Origin: Thecamonas trahens ATCC 50062
Taxonomy: Eukaryota > Protista > Apusomonadida
Length of the DNA: 64,000 nucleotides
Direction of reading: 5' to 3'
Assembly (NCBI RefSeq): GCF_000142905.1
Contig: NW_013657646.1
Coordinates: 247,324 to 311,323, forward strand
The notes beneath the pieces were generated by a model. The model did no database searches and was not told where the DNA came from. It saw nothing but the letters and a program-made list of their open reading frames with translations. Position numbers and translations under genes: made by a program. Of this stretch, positions 2,251-57,524 are shown in pieces (the stretch's first letter is position 1; each line of letters starts with the position of its first letter).

Positions 2251-2338
2251 GTTTGCCTGTTGGCCCTGTGTGCGCACGGTCGCCGCGCCGCTCCGTGCCC
2301 TGCCGCTGTTCCGCGCAATCTTCCGATGGTTGAATGCC

Positions 2339-2392
2339 ATGACTTGACGCCTCCTCATCCGCACTCATTCGTGCGGCGGTGGCGACAACGAG
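2339..2392 (+). promoter_or_regulatory. Candidate type-II SECIS element in the deiodinase 3' UTR
   Basis: Core ATGAC (2339-43) opposite CGAG (2389-92). 11-bp helix II TTGACGCCTCC/GGTGGCGACAA (9 WC pairs). Apical bulge TCAT. Perfect 6-bp mini-stem CCGCAC/GTGCGG. Located 89 nt after the stop. Confidence 0.75.
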
Positions 2393-2476
2393 CCTGAGCG
2401 CAAGCCCTGTGGGGCCTTGCCTTCCTCCCTTTTCACACCATCGTCATCAAACTGCGTTAGTACAGCGTTCAATATC

Positions 2477-5400
2477 TCATCTACCTCCGTACGTCGGCGG
2501 TGGCACTGTCGGGCTACTCACCACCGCTTCGTACGATGGCGGCATGATCGCCGTGTTAAATGCCGAGCCTGGCGGGCCAAAGTAAGCTGCCGGACACGAC
2601 GGCGGGAGCGGCGAGCTGCCGGGCACAGGCGGCATGACGCCGGCAGGCGTAAACGGCGGCGGTGGCGGCATACCGGCGCCACTACCCATCGGCGGCAGCG
2701 GAATGCCTTCGTCCACCCCAGGCGGCGGCCGCGGCTGCCGCGCCTGATGCACGCCCCGCCGCCGCGCCATCTGCTGCCGCTTGGTCACCACCATGATGAT
2801 CACCAGCAACAGCAGTGTGCCCGCCAGCCCACCGGCAATAGCCACCACTGGAGTCGTCGAGCTGCTCGAGCCCGACGAGCTCCGCGATGACGCCCCGGCC
2901 GTCGTCGACGAGCTGGATGTGGAGTTGATGCCGCTGATCCTGCACGTCGAGGAACATGCCGCTGTCGAGTCGCACTCTTCGCCGGCAGCCGAGTTGACAT
3001 ACCCATCGCCACACACAGCAAACGTGCAGTCTGGATCACACTGCGATGTCGCCACACGGCCGGTATCGCAGTCCTCGCCCGGTGCAACCACACCATCGCC
3101 ACACACCACGTTGATGCTCTTGCACGTCGGCGAGCAGAACAGGCTCGACGTCACCGCAGTGTCACACTCTTCGCCTGCCGCCGCATTCACCATGCCATCG
3201 CCGCACGACGGCGCCGTGCAGTCAGCATCACAGCTCACGGTGTGGACGCCGCCTTCGTCGCACACCTCGGACCGCACTCCGGTCGCCCTCACATTCGACA
3301 GCCCAATTGTGTCGCAGCTGGAGCACGATTGCTTGGTCTGCAAAAAGACGAGAAAGAGAGGCGCTGGCGTCCCCGTCGACCATCCAGAAAACTGCGTGAG
3401 CGAGACCACTGCCGACTTCCACGACGTAGACGACCGCGAAATGGTCACCGTCCCGCCAATCTGCGACGAGCTGCTCATCTGTGCAGACGAGAACAACTGG
3501 ACCACGAGCAGCTCACCAGAGTCGACGGTCTCGCACGGCGTAGAGCTGGCTGGATACCTCACGTCAAATGTGACTTCCTGCGTACCGGGCGGTAGGAGCG
3601 TTACCAGCCGGCGCTTGCCCGACGAGGGCGTTCCAGTGAACAGCACTGTCTCCCCTGCCTTTGCCGAGCTGCCCACAAGGCATGACGGGAGCGTAGCGGG
3701 GTAAAACTGGACACCGATCGCGTCCGCTACCGCGCTTGTCGATGACAGCGGAATCCGGAGGTCGAACTGGTGCGAAGAGCTCTCCACTCGCCCGTTACCA
3801 CATCGCGGCGCCCTGCAGCTGTTGCTGCACCCGTCGCTGTCGATGGCGTTGCCGTCATCGCACTCCTCCGGCGAGGTCACCACGCCGTCGCCGCACACCG
3901 GCAGCGTGCATGAGCTAGTGCACGGGGCCGAGTTAGGCGCCGACGCGTCGCACGGCTCGATGCCCTGGTGAACAAATCCGTCGCCGCATGACGCCGGCCG
4001 GCAGTTAACGCAGCTGTCCGTGTTGATAGTGTTGCCATCGTCGCACACCTCGCCGGTCGAGTACGGATTGACTAGGCCGTCGCCACAGACTGGAAACGTG
4101 CAGTCGACATCGCAGTATCCGGTGGCCGCTCCGCCCGAGTCGCACTCTTCCACCCCGTTGACAACAAAGTCACCGCACCGCGGGAGAAGGCAGCTCGAGC
4201 ACCCATCCGCCGGATTGGTGTTGCCGTCATCACACTCGCGCAGCAGCATGGCTCGGACCTCGACATCGTCCACAAAGGTGGTCGGGTCCGCGCCGCCGAC
4301 ACTGTCCGCCGACCGATAGAGCTTGATCTGGACGCCGATGCGCCGCGCCCGGTCGTCGAGCGAGTATCCGGTCATCCCCACCGCCTGCGGCGTGACATAG
4401 ACCACAGTCTCAGCGAACGACGTCGCGCTCGACAGGAGCGGCGAGACAGCGGCCACCTCGACATATGACGAGAGCAGAGCCCCGGTAGTCGTGTCGACAG
4501 TCCGTGCGGCAACATGCAGAAGCTGGCTCGTCGTGTTGCTCACCACCACGCCACATCTCGCGTCCGACGCAGCCTCGGCGCTTCGCGCCACGCCGCTCGT
4601 CCACGTTGTGAAAGACATGCCGGCAAAGCCGGTAACAGGCTTGAGCTCCAGCTCGCGCTGGCCGTTGCTCGAAAGAAGAACCGCCGTTGACGGGTCGCTC
4701 GCCGGCGTGCAGCCCGACTGGACCACCGCGTTGCTCAGCGGCGTGGTGTACCGATTAAACCACTCGGAAGTGGTCGAGAAGCTATCGAAAAAGCCGCCGT
4801 GTGCTGCCCGCGAGGTAAAGACGGGCGACGCCGCCGACCCGTCACCGCACTCTTCCCAGGTGCAGCTCGCTGAGCACCCGTCGCCATCAACGGCGTTCCC
4901 GTCGTCGCACTCTTCGCCAGCACCCGGGTTGATCACTCCGTCACCACAGCCACCATGGACCGTGCAGTTTGGTGTACAGGTTGTAGAGCCAAGCGGTGAG
5001 CCCGAGTCGCAAGCTTCAGACCCCGTCACCATGCCGTCGCCGCAGTACGCATACCGACAGTTGGGCATGCACTCTATGCTTCCGTCGTCGCACTCTTCGC
5101 CAGCCGCTACGTTGCGGATACCATCGCCGCAGACAGGGGCCGTGCAGTCGACGTTGCAACTCGCGCTCTCGCCTGCCGTGTCGCAGGCCTCGACACCTAT
5201 CCAAACCAAGCCGTCGCCACACCTGGCTGGAGCGCACAACACGCACGAGTCGTTCGTGAACGCATTGCCGTCGTCGCACACCTCGGCGCTCAAAGACGTC
5301 ACAATGTTGACGCCAACCAGCGCCGAAACGTCATAGCTTGAACCCGAGTGCACCGGCTGAGAGAAAATGAGCTCAAACGGCGCGTCGGTCGGCTTCCGGT

Positions 5401-6547
5401 TCTGCATGCTGGCAGGAATGGCGAGCTGGTGTGTGCCAAGTGAGCCACTGTGGCGCGGCAGGATCTCGGTGTGCTCGACGGAAGCGCCGCGGATCTTGAA
5501 TGTGGCATGAAGATCCTCTCCCGAGTCGACTTTCTCGCAGCTCCCGACTCCGGACCCGTACTCGTAAGTCACCTCGATGCCCCCAATTCGGGTGGTCAGG
5601 GTGTCGATGGTTAGGGTGGCCGTGCGATCGCTCGTGCCGTCAAACGTGATAGACTCTTGAGCACACGTACTGGAGATTCGCGCTCCGGTTCCCAGCGTCC
5701 ACTCGGGGCCGAGGCCGTGGGTGGCAAATGTCCACTCGTAAGTGGCGGTCGAGACGTTGCCGTTCACCACGCCGTCACCGCAGTATGGCGTGATGCGGCA
5801 CTCGACGCAGCCGTCGACGCTAGTTGCGTCCGGCGTCCCGTCGTCGCACTCTTCCGGCTCGGCCGGGCCGCCGTAGATGGCGACGTCGTCCAGAACCATG
5901 TGGTCAAAGCTGGAGCCAGACGAGGAGGCCTGGTTGAACCGCAGATGGATGATCTTGCCCTGCACATCGGCAGGGATGTCAATCGAGTGCGAAGACCACG
6001 TCGAGTGGGTCGTCGGCACAGCGGCAAGTATAGTCCACGTCGTGCCGGACGCTACCTTGTACTCGAGGGTCAGATCCTCGCCGTTGTCCGGGTTCTCGCA
6101 ACTGCCGGACGACGAGGTCATAAAGACGTCAAAGCTGACGCGAGTCACCTTCTCCAACGTTCCAACCAGTTGCAGCGTCCGAACCGAGTCGCCTTGGAAG
6201 CGGGCCGCCCACGATCCGCGGGCGGCGCACGTGCCGACGTTGCCAATGATGGCTACGCCTGTGGCCTGCCAAGCCGCGGAAATGGTGCCGGACTCAAAGT
6301 CATCACTGAAGATCAGCCGATTGCCAGACAGGTTGCTGACGTTGTATGCGTTGAGAATGCCATCGCCACAGTACTCACGGACACACACGGCCGAGCATCC
6401 ATCATACGAATCATTGTTGCCATCGTCGCACTCTTCGCCACTCTCCACCACCGCGTTGCCGCACGAGGCGCCCAACGCCTGCCGGCTGCAGAGGGTCACC
6501 ACAGCGAGAGCAGTCAGGACCACCACAAGCACGGGCGCACGCACCAT
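2477..6547 (-). CDS. Type I membrane protein: Myxococcus-type Cys-rich repeats (DUF4215-like) plus four reelin-like beta-sandwich inserts, TM helix, PPxY tail
   Basis: Signal peptide MVRAPVLVVVLTALAVVTLC. Many CGDG..EECDDGN..DGC repeats. TM VVAIAGGLAGTLLLLVIIMVV. Pro-rich cytosolic tail with PPSY and PPTY. Confidence 0.85.
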   Translation of the reverse strand: MVRAPVLVVVLTALAVVTLCSRQALGASCGNAVVESGEECDDGNNDSYDGCSAVCVREYCGDGILNAYNVSNLSGNRLIFSDDFESGTISAAWQATGVAIIGNVGTCAARGSWAARFQGDSVRTLQLVGTLEKVTRVSFDVFMTSSSGSCENPDNGEDLTLEYKVASGTTWTILAAVPTTHSTWSSHSIDIPADVQGKIIHLRFNQASSSGSSFDHMVLDDVAIYGGPAEPEECDDGTPDATSVDGCVECRITPYCGDGVVNGNVSTATYEWTFATHGLGPEWTLGTGARISSTCAQESITFDGTSDRTATLTIDTLTTRIGGIEVTYEYGSGVGSCEKVDSGEDLHATFKIRGASVEHTEILPRHSGSLGTHQLAIPASMQNRKPTDAPFELIFSQPVHSGSSYDVSALVGVNIVTSLSAEVCDDGNAFTNDSCVLCAPARCGDGLVWIGVEACDTAGESASCNVDCTAPVCGDGIRNVAAGEECDDGSIECMPNCRYAYCGDGMVTGSEACDSGSPLGSTTCTPNCTVHGGCGDGVINPGAGEECDDGNAVDGDGCSASCTWEECGDGSAASPVFTSRAAHGGFFDSFSTTSEWFNRYTTPLSNAVVQSGCTPASDPSTAVLLSSNGQRELELKPVTGFAGMSFTTWTSGVARSAEAASDARCGVVVSNTTSQLLHVAARTVDTTTGALLSSYVEVAAVSPLLSSATSFAETVVYVTPQAVGMTGYSLDDRARRIGVQIKLYRSADSVGGADPTTFVDDVEVRAMLLRECDDGNTNPADGCSSCLLPRCGDFVVNGVEECDSGGAATGYCDVDCTFPVCGDGLVNPYSTGEVCDDGNTINTDSCVNCRPASCGDGFVHQGIEPCDASAPNSAPCTSSCTLPVCGDGVVTSPEECDDGNAIDSDGCSNSCRAPRCGNGRVESSSHQFDLRIPLSSTSAVADAIGVQFYPATLPSCLVGSSAKAGETVLFTGTPSSGKRRLVTLLPPGTQEVTFDVRYPASSTPCETVDSGELLVVQLFSSAQMSSSSQIGGTVTISRSSTSWKSAVVSLTQFSGWSTGTPAPLFLVFLQTKQSCSSCDTIGLSNVRATGVRSEVCDEGGVHTVSCDADCTAPSCGDGMVNAAAGEECDTAVTSSLFCSPTCKSINVVCGDGVVAPGEDCDTGRVATSQCDPDCTFAVCGDGYVNSAAGEECDSTAACSSTCRISGINSTSSSSTTAGASSRSSSGSSSSTTPVVAIAGGLAGTLLLLVIIMVVTKRQQMARRRGVHQARQPRPPPGVDEGIPLPPMGSGAGMPPPPPFTPAGVMPPVPGSSPLPPSCPAAYFGPPGSAFNTAIMPPSYEAVVSSPTVPPPTYGGR

Positions 6548-6588
6548 AGCAAGCAAGGAACAAGAATGAAGTGTGAAGGGTGGAGAAA

Positions 6589-9205: not shown

Positions 9206-9866
9206 GATGCTGCAGTGTGCAGGCGGAGCGATGGAAGCTTTGGCCGACAGGCGCAGAAGGCGGCGGGGACGGAGGGAGGGGCGGACGAGGAGGGAGGGAG
9301 GGACGGGTGGAAGGGAGGTGTGGGTGTGGAAGAGAGTGTGTGGAGGGAGTACGTGGAGTGCGGTGGGGTGGGTGGGCGAGTATGAGGGTATGGCGGTGGT
9401 GGCGGCGGTGGCGGCGGTGGCGGTGGGGAGGTGGCGGCGGAAAACATGCCAAGAACCAAAGGTGGGCGGCTTGCCCGGACTGGACTGCATTGGACTTGAC
9501 TGGGCTGAGCGCCTGCTTCAGATACCAAACAGACATCAGCCAGGTGGATGCCCAGCAGACACCCACGCGGCACCGATCTCGTCAGGGGAAGGACTATCGG
9601 TTGGTTGCACCAGGGTGCATGCACTGGCATCGCACCAGGTGGCGCAGGGATCGAGATCGCGGTGATGAGGCCCCCGGCCAAGTCATGCCGATACCTCGGC
9701 CTCATCAGGAGACCCACCGTCCAGCATCCGTCTCAATCGTGCTTGTACCATTGATGAGCCCTGTATCGGGCATTGCCGCGTCCGGAGACGGCGGCCGTGC
9801 GGCATGTGACCGACCAAAATGGGGCAAGGGGGACGGGAGGGGGAGCCACCCGTCTCGCGATCAAGG

Positions 9867-11102
9867 ATGCCGGAAGTGACAGCAGTTGCAGCGACGGTGA
9901 TGGTGATGATGGCACTGGCGAGTGTGGTGGAGTGTGGGCCGACGACGTGGCCCTCGCCCGAGTGTTCGGGCCAGGGCGTGCTGTACGCCGACGTGGGCGT
10001 GTGCGAGTGCTTCGACTGCTTCTCGGGCGCTAACTGCTCTAAGGTCGATGCTGGCGGATGCGTGGTCAATGCGGTGGGTGGCTCGCCGCTGATGTACCAG
10101 TCGTACTGGGCGCAGTACGATGGCCCGCCTGTCGCCGCCGAGGTTGCCCTGCCGGCCTGGTACCGCACCGGGTACCAGTTTGAGAGCGTGCTGACGCCGG
10201 CGTCGACGGGCCTAGGCGCTGCGCTGCGCGAGGCGATCCTGGACGTCCACGCATCGGCAGGCAACGTGAATACCGAGGGCATGTCGGTGGTGGTTGGCTC
10301 GGGATGCACGCTCCTTATCGCGGCGTCAAGCGTGGCGCTGGCCGAGGCCGCGCCGTGCGAGCAGACAACCATCTACGCCCAGCCGCCGTACTACGACGGG
10401 TACGCCAACTGGGCGTCTGTGGGCGCGGCGAACACGTCGTTCTCGGCATCGAGCTCGCTCGATCCACAGCGACAGTGCATTGTCGAGTTTGTGACCCTCC
10501 CGAACAATCCAACCGGCGAGCTGCGGTCGGCGGTGTACTCGGGGAGCCAGGTGGCGCACGTCCACGACATGGTCTACGCCTGGCCGTCTCTGACCAACAA
10601 GATCCACAACTACTCGGCAGACATCATGCTCTTCTCGCTCTCCAAGCTCTCCGGGCACGCAGGCTCGCGCATCGGGTGGGCGCTGGTCAAGGACCCCGCG
10701 GTCGCCGCCGCCATGGAGAGCTTCATCTCCAAGGCCGAGATCACGACGTCGGTCGACTCGCGCTACCGCGCGCTGGCCATCCTGCGCGCCATCACCGCCA
10801 CCCGCGGCGGCTTCTTCTCCGCCATTCGCACCGAATTTACTGCCCGCTGGAACAAGGTCCTGCCTATCTTTGCCTCCTCCACCCGTTTTGCCATCCGCTC
10901 GGTCCCGGACCAGTTCTACCTCTGGATCGAGTGCCTCGACGGCTCGACTTCGTGCTACGACGTCTTTCTCGCTGCCGGCATCCAGGGCTGGGCCGGGCCT
11001 TCGTTTGGCGCCTCGGATGCCTTTGTCCGCCTCGAGCTCGTCCAGCACGACCTTGTCTTTGACATCCTCCTCACCAAGCTTGCAGCCCTCGTTGCCGCCT
11101 AG
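9867..11102 (+). CDS. Alliinase / tryptophan aminotransferase-related (TAA1/TAR-like) PLP enzyme with EGF-like domain
   Basis: Signal peptide. EGF-like CSGQG..CECFDCFSGANCS. VVGSGCTLLI, PPYY, EFVTLPNNPTG, HDMVYAWP. PLP lysine motif FSLSKLSGHAGSRIGWA. Confidence 0.9.
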   Translation: MPEVTAVAATVMVMMALASVVECGPTTWPSPECSGQGVLYADVGVCECFDCFSGANCSKVDAGGCVVNAVGGSPLMYQSYWAQYDGPPVAAEVALPAWYRTGYQFESVLTPASTGLGAALREAILDVHASAGNVNTEGMSVVVGSGCTLLIAASSVALAEAAPCEQTTIYAQPPYYDGYANWASVGAANTSFSASSSLDPQRQCIVEFVTLPNNPTGELRSAVYSGSQVAHVHDMVYAWPSLTNKIHNYSADIMLFSLSKLSGHAGSRIGWALVKDPAVAAAMESFISKAEITTSVDSRYRALAILRAITATRGGFFSAIRTEFTARWNKVLPIFASSTRFAIRSVPDQFYLWIECLDGSTSCYDVFLAAGIQGWAGPSFGASDAFVRLELVQHDLVFDILLTKLAALVAA

Positions 11103-29817: not shown

Positions 29818-30161
29818 GGCCAAACGAGGTGTGAGTGCCAACACTGATGGGGTGTGCCGAGGAGAGGAGGAGGAGAGGGGGGGTGGCCAGGAAGAGGGGG
29901 GATCGACCCAATGCCATTGGTTGCTGTCACCAATGATTGGTGGTATTGGTTGGTTGGTTGGTGGTTGGCGGTTACGGTTGATTTGGCCATGACATCGATT
30001 ATTTCTCGATGGCCATCATCATTACCAACCGAGCCACCTCTGCCGAAGGCCACACTCTTCCCCAACTCCCCCACTCCACCCCTCCCCTCCCCCCCCTCGC
30101 CCCACCTTCCCCCACCCTTGCACAAGCCACACACACTTACAACAACAACAAAACGCCAGCC

Positions 30162-38532: not shown

Positions 38533-40880
38533 AGGGTAGTTGTAGACGATGGTCGGCATGTTGTAGACCTGCTCGCAGAGGTAGCGCTCATGCTCCGAGG
38601 CAAGGTCGATGCCCCACTCGACCTTTTTCTCGAACGAGACGTCGCCGGCGGCGATGGCAGCCTCGAGGACGCGGATGGCCTCAGTGTAGGTGATGCGGGT
38701 AAAGTCCGACTCGACAATGTTGTAAAGGCGGTCGATGAGGCCCGGCGCCACGTACTGGTCAAACACGTTGATCTCCTCGGAGCACTTGGCCATGACGGTC
38801 GAGACGCAGTGCTTGAGGTAGTCCTCGGCGCACGCCATGTTGTCGTGGATGTCAGCAAAGGCAAGCTCGGGCTCGATCATCCAGAACTCGGCAAGGTGGC
38901 GCGAGGTGTGCGAGTTCTCGGCGCGGAAGGTCGGGCCAAAGGTGTAGACCGACGAGAGGCCGGCGCAGTACGTCTCGACGTTGAGCTGGCCCGAGACGGT
39001 GAGCATGGCCGGCTTGGAGAAAAAGTCCTGCGCGTAGTCGACGTGGCCGTCGTCGGTGGCCGGAATCTCCGAGACCAAGCCATCCTCCTTGAGGAGCGTG
39101 GTAACGCGGAACATTTCACCGGCGCCCTCGCAGTCGGACGCCGTGATGAGTGGCGTGTGGACGTACTGACAGCCGATGCCCTGGAAGAACTCGTGGGTGG
39201 CCATGGCGAGGACGTTGCGGACGCGCGCGGCGGCGCCGACCACCTTGGTCCGCACACGCAGGTGCGCCAGCGGCCACATGGTCTCAAGCTTGATTCGCGA
39301 CTTGGCCAGCGGGTACTCGTCGGGGGAGCACTCGCCGAGAATCTCCACCGTCGTCGCCTTGATCTCCACCGCCTGGTTCTTACCGGGCGACTCGACAATG
39401 GTGCCGACGACCTTGAGCGACGCACCCGTCGCCGCCGCCTGAAGCTCAGCGAACCCGATCTTGTCCTCCTCCACAATGACCTGCAGGCCCTTGATGGTGG
39501 AACCGTCGACAAGCTCCACAAACGCCATGGTCGTCTGCTTGCGGATGGTGCGGACCCAGCCGGCGACCGTGACCGGCGCGCCGGACCACTTGAGCCCGGC
39601 CGAGAGCACGTGCCGCACCGACGTCCGCTGCGAGTACTTGAGCGTCACCGGCGCGTCTGGCAGCGTCGCCGGGTCGTCGAGCGTGACAGGGAGCGTGCGG
39701 ACCGACTTGGCCGGCGCAGCGTCAGTACCGTCGGGCGCCGACGCGCCGGCCTTGCCACCGGCCTTGCCACCGGCCTTGCCACCGGCCTTGCCGCCAGCCT
39801 TGCCACCAGCCTTGCCGCCCTTCTTGCCGCCCTTCTTGCCGCCCTTCTTGCCGCTGGCCGCCGCCGCGATGTCGGCCTCGGTCATCGGGCCGAGCGCCTC
39901 GGCCATCTTGGCCTGGAGAATAGTCTCGACTGCATCGCTATCCACGAAAGGCAGCGAGCGCATGACCTGGCCCTTGAGCTTGGTCGCCTTGATCTGGTAG
40001 CGGAGCTTGGCGAGGTCGTCGGCGTTGTCGGCGAGGGTCTTGGCCACCGCCGCCGCAATCTCGTCGTCGGTGTACGAGACGCCCACGCCGGTCGTCTGCT
40101 CAAAGTCGGCCACGTCGAGTTCATCGACGGGCATCTCCTTGGCCTTCTTCAGCCACTTGGTTGCGGCCTTGAACTGCGACTTGCGGATTCGCTCGTCGGC
40201 CACGTACTGCGCGAGGAACACCAGGTGCTCATCGGCCACCATCTTCTTGGCCGCCTTGGCCACCTCGCCGAGCAGCTTGCGAGCCTCCTCAGACTCGGGC
40301 GTGCCGACCTAGGAGGTTGATCAGCAGTGTGGTGTCGGGTGGTGTGTCGGGTGATCGGGTGGTATGTCGGGTGATCGGGTGGCGTGTCGGGTGTCGTGTC
40401 GGGTGTCGTGTCGGGTGTCATATCGAGTTGGTCGGGTGTTGTGTCGTGCCGGGTGTCGTCGTGTCGGGTGTCGTGTCGGGTTGGTCGATATCCATGTCAG
40501 AGTGACCGTGTGAGTGAGTGCAGACGCGACCACAGACACCACGGGCGAGAGCAAGAGAGCAGGGGGAGAAGGGGGGGGGGGAGGGGGAGGGGAGGGGAGG
40601 GGAGGGGAGGGGAGGGGAGGGGAGGGGAGGGGGAGGGGGAGGGGGGGAGGGGTGCGGGTGCCCGGCACGGTGGCCATGGACAATGCAGGGGAGAGTGCAT
40701 CCAACCAGGGGGAACGGGGGAGGGGAAGAGCGCAAAGGGGGAAGGGGAGGGCGGGGAGAGACGGGAGGCACATACCGCAGCATGGATGACAAGAAGGGCC
40801 TGGGTAAGGTCGGTGTTGTCGATAGTGTCAGGGGCGAGACCCAGGTCGGCAATGACAGCCTTGGCGTGATCAGCGTCCAT
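38200..40880 (-). CDS. Asparaginyl-tRNA synthetase with GlnRS-type N-terminal domain; exons 40880-40776 and 40308-38200
   Basis: OB-fold GWVRTIR..F..L.DGS. LTVSGQL, YTFGPTFRAENSHTSRHLAEFWMIEPE, GGSQRE, HSGFGVGFERL, PFPR. Phase-0 intron GTATGT...TAG. Confidence 0.93.
40330..40650. repeat. Intronic repeats: degenerate GTGTCGG-type units (40330-40480) and (GGGGA)n (40581-40650)
   Basis: Directly visible inside the AsnRS intron. Confidence 0.85.
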
Positions 40881-55802: not shown

Positions 55803-57524
55803 GTGGGTGACATTGGGCTCGGCTGTCTCTGGCTTCCGCTTGTTAGCATAAGCTTGCAAGGCTATTCAGGGCTTCGGATCAATGTGCCCAAGCAGCTGGG
55901 CCTCACTGCGCCAAATGCGAGGACATACACGGAGGAGTCGCCTTCTTGGAGGACTGGGGTGGAGCTGTGCGCCACGCTCAAGGTGGCGCCGGTCCCGTTT
56001 CCGCATCGAAACGTGGTTGCGGTGCTTGCGGGCGAGGCGTACGCCATGCCGTGGGGCATCTCCATCTCGGTCCAGGCCAAGTCGAACGCGGCGCATCAGG
56101 CGGTGATGATGCCGGTGTCTACAGCGTCGAACTCGCTGGTGTGGAGCTACTCGCGTGAGGCGCAGGTGCTCTTCTACCACATGCTGAGGTCGTTCCCGCG
56201 GCTGGTGTCGGTCATCCAAGCCGGGGTGTATGTGCCTGAGAGCGCGGCGGTGGCCATTGCCAACACCAACCAGTACGTGTACGGCTTGAGCCAGGGTGAG
56301 GCGCAGGCCATTTCGGCGTGGCTCTCGGACGTGGCCGGCCTCGAGCCGATGTCTCTGCCGGACGCGGTCGTCGACATGTGCCTGAGCCACTGCTCCTCGC
56401 TCGGCACTCTGGTCCCGCCGCTCACGCCGGACATGATGGACCACGACGCCAACGTCTTGCTCGACGAGCTGGCTGCCGAGGGCCTCACCCTGCCGTATCA
56501 GTCGTTCTCGCCGGTCTCGTCGCCGATTTTCGAGTCGCTGCCGTCTCTGACGCCGACGTCTGCGTCTGCATCGTCGCCCGAGGACGCACGGATGCGTGAG
56601 TTGTTTTCCGCGTTTTCCAACTCGTCGCCGACCTCGTCGTCGTGCGAGGTCTCGCCGCGGTCACCGTCGCTGCATGGTAGCGGCCATGGGGCGAGCCACA
56701 GCGGCGCGAGCTCTACGTCAACGTCGGCCCGCGACTCGCCGCTCATCGTCCCGTCGCTGACCAACCATCCAGCGGGCCTCGCCGCCATCCCCATTCCGGT
56801 CTCAGCCCGGGTCTCGTCGCCGCGGTCGGTTTCGCCGCGGTCGCCACGGAGCACCGGCTCGCCGCGGGTCCCGGACCGGCGCCAGAGTCTGTCCAAGGCG
56901 ACGCGCGGGCTGAAGATTTCCCGTTCGCCGCGGTCACCACGGTCGCCGCGGTCGCCGCGGTCGCCTGCATCGCCTGTATCGCCGGCGGGCACCGGATCTG
57001 CGGGGCGGGCGGCACCTCCGGCGGCGTCGCGCTCGGCGAAGGCGGTCTCGACCGACCGCACGCTTGTGAAGAGCCCAAATGCCATTGTGGGCGCGTACTG
57101 CAAGCACGCCCGCTTTGCTTGTATTAACGACGTGGTCCTTGCGCTCCTCGAGGAGTTTATGCTCACCTCGCCCAAGTCGAGCAAGTCGGGTGGCAAGGCT
57201 GCCCGCAACGGGCCCAAGCGCGCGGCCATCGGGCTCCGCGAGGTGCTCAAGCAGTCGCAGCGGTCGGCGGTCGCCGTCGTCCTCTTTGCGGCCGACATCG
57301 AGGGCGCAGTCCGCGACAAGCTTGGCAAGCTCATCGGCTCGATTACCGAAGCATGCGCCGAGTCGGGCACGCTGGTTGTCTTTGCGCTCACGCGCGACGA
57401 GCTCTCGCGGGCGCTCGGCAAGACGGGAAACATCTCATGTGTCGGCCTGCTGCACACGGCAGTGACTGCCGTCGACCTCGGCCCACTCCGTGCTCTCATG
57501 GCCGAGGCGTATGCGCAGGCTTGA
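55803..57524 (+). CDS. Divergent SECIS-binding protein 2 (SBP2)-like L7Ae protein; main exon, upstream exons unresolved
   Basis: AYCKH..INDVVLALLEE ... KRAAIGLREVLK..VVLFAADIE ... LVVFALTRDELSRALGK..ISCVGLL parallels SBP2 YC....V..LL.EL...RRLVLGLREVLKH...PFVFALNRKALGRSLNK...VSVVGI. CAG acceptor at 55803. Confidence 0.72.
   Translation: MGDIGLGCLWLPLVSISLQGYSGLRINVPKQLGLTAPNARTYTEESPSWRTGVELCATLKVAPVPFPHRNVVAVLAGEAYAMPWGISISVQAKSNAAHQAVMMPVSTASNSLVWSYSREAQVLFYHMLRSFPRLVSVIQAGVYVPESAAVAIANTNQYVYGLSQGEAQAISAWLSDVAGLEPMSLPDAVVDMCLSHCSSLGTLVPPLTPDMMDHDANVLLDELAAEGLTLPYQSFSPVSSPIFESLPSLTPTSASASSPEDARMRELFSAFSNSSPTSSSCEVSPRSPSLHGSGHGASHSGASSTSTSARDSPLIVPSLTNHPAGLAAIPIPVSARVSSPRSVSPRSPRSTGSPRVPDRRQSLSKATRGLKISRSPRSPRSPRSPRSPASPVSPAGTGSAGRAAPPAASRSAKAVSTDRTLVKSPNAIVGAYCKHARFACINDVVLALLEEFMLTSPKSSKSGGKAARNGPKRAAIGLREVLKQSQRSAVAVVLFAADIEGAVRDKLGKLIGSITEACAESGTLVVFALTRDELSRALGKTGNISCVGLLHTAVTAVDLGPLRALMAEAYAQA

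Follow-up and report, generated by a model that had tools for sequence, protein, structure and literature searches.

A predicted SECIS element with a UCAU apical bulge in a deiodinase-like selenoprotein gene of Thecamonas trahens, and its place in a SECIS family of the same genome

The stretch of Thecamonas trahens DNA analysed here (the window, 64,000 nucleotides) has a GC content of 63% and carries eukaryotic genes including ELP3, kinesin, Not3 and VPS13. A scan for bacterial promoters and terminators has no bearing on eukaryotic sequence of this kind and was discarded. Near one end of the window lies a gene for a deiodinase-like selenoprotein with a strong hairpin inside its coding region, and near the other end lies a candidate for the protein that binds selenocysteine (Sec) insertion elements:

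1543-2250, + strand: deiodinase-like selenoprotein gene, from translation, Pfam and GC3
1855-1902, + strand: strong coding-region hairpin of 48 nt, starting 6 nt past the Sec codon
55803-57524, + strand: ORF of a candidate SBP2 homologue, with an L7Ae-like C-terminal domain at about 57129-57452

The deiodinase-like gene has an in-frame UGA (1846-1848) where deiodinases carry their catalytic residue, within the thioredoxin-fold active-site motif GSWT-U-PPFR, and its true stop is a second UGA at 2248-2250. The 133 residues past the first UGA match Pfam T4_deiodinase (PF00837) with an E value of 1.9e-13 and 50.7 bits against a cut-off of 27, and a genome search that reads through stop codons scores the deiodinase locus at 64.8 bits with one TGA. 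GC3 is 0.85 before the UGA and 0.80 after it, compared with 0.62 in the untranslated region (UTR). The persistence of both the Pfam match and coding GC3 beyond UGA 1846-1848 argues that translation of this ORF runs on past it. TGA is also an ordinary stop codon in this genome, and ends both the deiodinase-like gene and its upstream neighbor.

Downstream of the gene, a SECIS-like hairpin begins 89 nt past the stop, within a 226-nt gap that extends to a convergent gene whose stop codon occupies 2477-2479. Because this stop is only 85 nt from the hairpin, the 3' UTRs of the two genes probably overlap. The convergent neighbor (2480-6556, - strand) encodes a 1359-aa cysteine-rich repeat protein with Pfam DUF4215 repeats and a Reelin subrepeat B. 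Elsewhere in the vicinity, long C-rich or CT-rich polypyrimidine tracts (510-560, 800-930 and 1430-1510) each precede one of three successive genes on the same strand, and an assembly gap of 100 Ns is present at 689-788, 1.5 kb upstream of the hairpin. The product of the gene at 9819-11099 (+ strand) resembles alliinases (Pfam Alliinase_C, E 5e-64), a family that is unusual for a protist, and has an EGF-like piece at its N terminus.

The hairpin has the layout of a type-II SECIS element, with the following parts:

2328-2338, + strand: weak helix I, 5' strand (GG, UUG and UGC segments), read from the sequence
2339-2343, + strand: 5' half of the SECIS core, AUGAC, from the sequence; all 15 SECIS of the genome have NUGAC here
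2344-2354, + strand: helix II, 5' strand of 11 nt, from the fold and from family comparison
2355-2358, + strand: apical 5' bulge UCAU, where AA(R) is expected, from sequence and fold
2359-2364 with 2371-2376, + strand: mini-stem CCGCAC/GUGCGG of 6 bp, from the fold
2365-2370, + strand: 6-nt loop UCAUUC, from the fold
2377, + strand: single unpaired C, from the fold
2378-2388, + strand: helix II, 3' strand, from the fold
2389-2392, + strand: 3' half of the SECIS core, CGAG, from the sequence; C-GA-G/C/A in 15 of the 15 SECIS of the genome
2393-2406, + strand: weak helix I, 3' strand, read from the sequence

An earlier note on this DNA, made from its letters, had read the region as an AUGAC/CGAG core, an 11-position helix II with A.A and U.U mismatches, a UCAU bulge and a 6-bp mini-stem, and this reading holds base for base. 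AUGA (2339-2342) and GA (2390-2391) stand in register with helix II, and tandem sheared G.A pairs are possible at the level of sequence. The 11 positions of helix II comprise nine standard pairs plus the A.A and U.U mismatches, a length that falls within the type-II expectation of about 9-13 bp; the mini-stem above the bulge, with its 6 bp and 6-nt loop, is likewise a type-II feature. When 2344-2388 is folded with RNAfold, as the note had proposed, the predicted type-II structure is returned as both the MFE and the centroid (-19.9 kcal/mol), with a z-score of -3.61 and none of 200 dinucleotide shuffles as stable. The note had also called helix I weak, and it is, because the whole 96-nt stretch that includes the flanks is about as stable as its shuffles (z 0.05). 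Helix I is without energy support and is not conserved among the SECIS elements of this genome.

The apical region departs from what is expected of a SECIS. An unpaired AA(R), or rarely CC, would be expected 10-13 nt past the quartet, and the UCAU bulge supplies neither. No AA occurs between the core halves, whether in the 5' strand, the bulge or the loop, and the CC at 2353-2354 is paired inside helix II, hence the element is no unpaired-CC variant either. Its CGAG also does not conform to the KGAW consensus for the 3' core (PMC3753652). An alternative 3' partner, CGAC at 2383-2386, was rejected: the resulting fold reaches -12.9 kcal/mol as opposed to -19.9 kcal/mol, clashes with the mini-stem and departs from the geometry of the family described below.

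To place the element among its relatives, we assembled 15 SECIS from the same genome, reached through protein families by Pfam and NCBIfam searches, with each Sec gene translated:

Deiodinase-like: three genes including that of the window; the other two read GSRS-U-PPS and GSYS-U-PPI
GPx: four genes, VAS[YFK]-U-GLT and IAAL-U-GLT
SelW-like: two genes
SelT-like: one gene, CQS-U
SelS: one gene, ending GG-U-G-stop
SelK: one gene, ending GG-U-G-stop
MsrA: one gene (L037), FGMG-U-FW
SelO: two genes, ending U-SS-stop

No gene matching Pfam Sep15_SelM was found in the genome. A metagenome search for relatives of the deiodinase yielded one contig of 34% identity (L030), in which there was no convincing SECIS.

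Each of the other 14 Sec genes carries one hairpin of the same build, 40-400 nt past its stop codon. In the shared build, NUGAC leads into a helix II strand of 10-11 nt and a bulge of 4 nt; a mini-stem comes next, and after it, usually beyond one unpaired nucleotide, the return strand and C-GA-G/C/A. The window element carries every part of this build. A C-rich triplet, YCC, usually precedes NUGAC. The genome consensus can be written as YCC-NUGAC, a helix II of 10-11 nt, a 4-nt bulge N-C/A-A-N, a mini-stem, one unpaired nucleotide, the return strand and C-GA-S. Across 11 of these SECIS, helix II is 93.5% paired, compared with 55% for column shuffles and 33-43% when the strands are slid against each other. 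Two-sided changes occur at all 11 helix II pairs in the same 11 SECIS, the alignment having been fitted to the model. The comparison with other selenoprotein 3' UTRs of the same genome that the earlier note had suggested thus reveals covariation of helix II.

Ten of the 15 bulges contain AA (CCAA four times, UCAA and GAAA twice each, ACAA and CAAC), and the other five do not: UCAU in the window, CCAU in a GPx gene, CCAC in SelT, CUAC in a SelW-like gene and GAGC in SelS. Bulge position 2 is C in 10 of the 15. Position 3, which corresponds to A2357 of the window element, is A in 14, and position 4 is A in nine, C in four and U in two. Immediately ahead of the core UGA there are ten cases of A, three of C and two of U, so that five of the 15 have neither A nor G there (CUGAC in L010, L033 and L041; UUGAC in L012 and L015). 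At the 3' core we find CGAG ten times, CGAC four times and CGAA once, and KGAW never.

As judged from these sequences, the first adenine of the usual AA pair is conserved and the second merely preferred, with A at bulge position 4 in nine of 15. Since the 15 SECIS share core and geometry while five of them lack AA, the window element is a single case of a SECIS consensus that is relaxed throughout the genome, and no isolated exception. The proposal of a lineage-specific SECIS variant is therefore borne out, in the lack of AA in one third of the elements, in the lack of A or G before UGA in as many, and in the C-GA-S/A found in all. The relaxation holds, but UCAU itself does not replace AA throughout the lineage, since ten of 15 elements keep AA and 14 keep the first A. 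The expectation that search tools would miss such elements also proved sound, as published patterns demand AA or CC and Rfam SECIS_1 detects none of the 11 loci on which it was tried. For RF00031 (SECIS_1), no match at E<=10 was obtained in the region, in the 28.7-Mb genome, or in 11 short loci that each contain one SECIS. All that these Rfam scans did return was weak miRNA-like noise, which included the hairpin after the UGA.

In sequence, the window element is closest to the SECIS of a deiodinase-like paralog (L005). The L005 bulge is UCAA rather than UCAU; CCGCA comes next in both elements, and both return strands contain UGCGGCGG. In so nearly identical a neighborhood, one substitution explains the difference between the two bulges. 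The same observation would suit a SECIS in decay, in which the change of the second adenine to U has crippled Sec insertion, mostly truncated protein is made, and the gene is heading to loss or to conversion of Sec to Cys; AA(R) has indeed been described as essential in animal SECIS (PMC2761289; PMC8704476). Such a history is improbable here. The ORF is intact, with coding GC3 and the Pfam match persisting past the UGA. Moreover, genes from four other core families (SelS, SelT, SelW-like and GPx) also lack AA, and joint decay of all five is unlikely for this reason.

We also considered whether the hairpin could be a chance product of GC-rich sequence, with the true SECIS located elsewhere or the UGA not recoded. 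GC-rich sequence folds readily, and the z-score of 0.05 for the 96-nt region is what such an origin would give. We searched with a type-II descriptor that is agnostic to AA. It consists of ATGA, a helix II of 10-12 positions that are >=80% paired, a bulge of 3-5 nt, a mini-stem of >=5 bp, 0-2 unpaired nucleotides and then GA. In 128 kb (both strands of the window) there are two ATGA-core matches, the element and a site at 29934. The latter is GT-rich, low in complexity and laden with wobble pairs, and was dismissed as spurious. Forty dinucleotide shuffles give a mean of 0.225 descriptor matches per 128 kb, which corresponds to a chance expectation of roughly 5e-4 for one strand of the 226-nt UTR.

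A second search used covariance models trained on this genome. The models R2 and R3 were bootstrapped from a single-sequence model (R1) and cover only the core and helix II, such that the bulge lies outside them. R2, built without the SelS element, still recovers the SelS SECIS at 37.8 bits, and thus the models generalise. For the hold-out model R3 the window was left out, and ten SECIS from elsewhere in the genome served as the training set. R3 gives 2336-2392 a score of 18.9 bits, rank 2 in 128 kb, with an E value of 0.12 per window and about 2e-4 for the UTR alone. The top match of R3 in the window, 39566-39634, reaches 19.5 bits, and the hold-out score of the element is thus modest. The site at 39566-39634 is inside a 1086-aa ORF and was taken as noise as far as SECIS function is concerned, although the occurrence of a similar score within an ORF does speak for chance. 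In a genome-wide run with R2, 150 of 31,191 first-look candidates were scored, and two training elements plus one other locus (L029) were returned, a yield that is unusable as a census. There is no Sec gene upstream of L029, which is a probable false positive.

The three tests that do not depend on AA (z-score, descriptor and R3) agree on a real element. The search with a relaxed motif that the earlier note had recommended recovers it both by the descriptor without AA and by the lineage-trained covariance model. The note had also raised the possibility of a better canonical SECIS, and no other SECIS candidate, canonical or not, was found downstream on the same strand by permissive scan, descriptor or model. 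Together with a chance expectation of 2e-4 to 5e-4 in the UTR, and with a core, helix length, 4-nt bulge, mini-stem and single 3' nucleotide that match those of the 14 other SECIS, this makes a chance hairpin very unlikely.

Equally slight is the prospect of an assembly or base-call error at 2358, for although a single base separates UCAU from the UCAA of two other SECIS in the genome and the contig is of draft quality (the 100-N gap lies 1.5 kb upstream), the other four SECIS without AA differ in their substitutions (CCAU, CCAC, CUAC and GAGC), and errors would have to recur at one functional position. Were the true base A, the window element would be canonical, and the four other genes without AA would be unaffected.

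Our preferred reading is that 2339-2392 serves as SECIS for the mRNA of the deiodinase-like selenoprotein gene at 1543-2250, a non-canonical element with a UCAU bulge that is predicted to direct Sec insertion; we consider this reading very probable. The analysis shows the sequence, fold and position of the element, the architecture of its family and the covariation of helix II; how the element acts is inferred. The AUGA and GA halves would form a kink-turn, the predicted binding site of an SBP2 homologue, and the resulting complex would recruit eEFSec and Sec-tRNA, such that UGA 1846-1848 would be read as selenocysteine. Under the simplest reading, the machinery of this organism requires a single adenine, whichever base follows, since five genes of unrelated core families lack AA and the first A is almost invariant. 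A pyrimidine in place of the second A, as in the window, would accordingly be accepted during read-through.

A candidate for the SBP2 homologue is encoded in the window itself. In Pfam, the C-terminal domain encoded by ORF 55803-57524 matches L7Ae weakly and below the cut-off (E 0.0086). Compared with solved structures, this domain matches one only, namely human SECISBP2 in its RNA-binding domain (7zjw chain B, residues 643-750, E 0.0019). This ORF is likely to encode a divergent SBP2, 53 kb from a SECIS that lacks AA. Another gene of the pathway, selD, is present elsewhere in the genome (L039, G000:C3:661585-665307, 192.8 bits); the stretch with its N-terminal Sec/Cys site consists of Ns.

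The coding region may contribute to recoding as well. The region 1846-1910 folds with an MFE of -33.6 kcal/mol and a z-score of -4.07, and none of 200 shuffles is as stable. A hairpin with the same spacing from the UGA is found in the MsrA Sec gene, where it starts at about 1528 of L037 and has a z-score of -4.7. Hairpins of this kind follow the UGA in two of the 11 Sec genes examined, the deiodinase-like and MsrA genes, and are absent from the nine others. The Sec redefinition element (SRE) of SelN is also spaced 6 nt from its UGA. By analogy, and speculatively, the 1855-1902 hairpin may be an SRE-like candidate that adds to recoding efficiency. It might even compensate for a weaker SECIS, a link that is unproven because MsrA, with its similar hairpin, has an AA-type SECIS.

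A broader proposal is that the Sec machinery of this lineage has re-specified how it reads SECIS elements, requiring one apical adenine, leaving the base before UGA free and fixing the 3' core as C-GA-S. We offer it tentatively, as an idea that stops somewhat short of being probable. If it is true, co-evolved contacts would be expected in SBP2, eEFSec or the ribosome, and the 'essential AA' would be a habit of particular lineages and no universal requirement. Across its selenoprotein genes, the genome presents all four bases (A, U, C and G) at the site of the second adenine, a natural series of variants that makes the role of the apical motif directly testable.

Such relaxation would matter for annotation. 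Every census of a selenoproteome rests on SECIS prediction, and the curated covariance models have been trained mostly on canonical elements. Because one third of the SECIS in this genome lack AA and Rfam sees none of the 11 tested, selenoprotein counts for the lineage and its relatives are likely too low, and gene models are likely to have been truncated at the Sec codon.

SECIS consensus sequences specific to an organism and elements in which AA is changed to CC are already known. Our search of the literature on SECIS variants found no description of a genome that combines a fixed NUGAC...C-GA-S core with freedom at the second apical adenine in many families. SECISearch3 describes a core of UGAN/KGAW and apical adenines that are conserved, with cytosines in a few cases (PMC3753652), and the SECISearch patterns demand NTGA..AA..GA or NTGA..CC..GA (PMC2375036). 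Relative to the canonical type-II (form 2) SECIS of most human selenoprotein mRNAs, the window element has the same location in the 3' UTR after a Sec UGA, the same AUGA/GA kink-turn core and the same overall size; helix II again spans about 11 bp, and a mini-stem again comes after the 5' bulge. It differs in having a single A in its bulge (UCAU), in a 3' core of CGAG instead of KGAW, and in giving no match to Rfam SECIS_1.

The coding-region hairpin can be compared with the SRE of SelN/SEPN1, a stem-loop within the coding sequence that raises UGA recoding (PMC6844570). Both are stable stem-loops in the coding region just past a Sec UGA. The candidate here has a counterpart in only one other of the 11 Sec genes examined.

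Closer parallels to the element exist among atypical SECIS. Human SECIS carry AA, or CC in the case of SelM, SelO and Trxr3 (PMC2761289), and these vertebrate CC variants are likewise accepted as functional SECIS with other bases in the place of the AA pair. In the CC variants both adenines are changed to C in a few orthologous genes, whereas in unrelated families of this single genome the first A stays and U, C or G may stand in for the second. Organism-specific SECIS have been described in Ostreococcus, with G before the quartet and long mini-stems, and in Dictyostelium, with UGUA before the core and an AAA bulge (Lobanov et al. 2007, PMC2375036). As in those organisms, unrelated selenoprotein genes of Thecamonas trahens converge on a SECIS sequence of their own. 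The Ostreococcus and Dictyostelium elements keep an unpaired AA or AAA, whereas in the present family NUGAC...C-GA-S is fixed, the second A is relaxed, and C or U is allowed before UGA, as occurs in five of the 15 elements.
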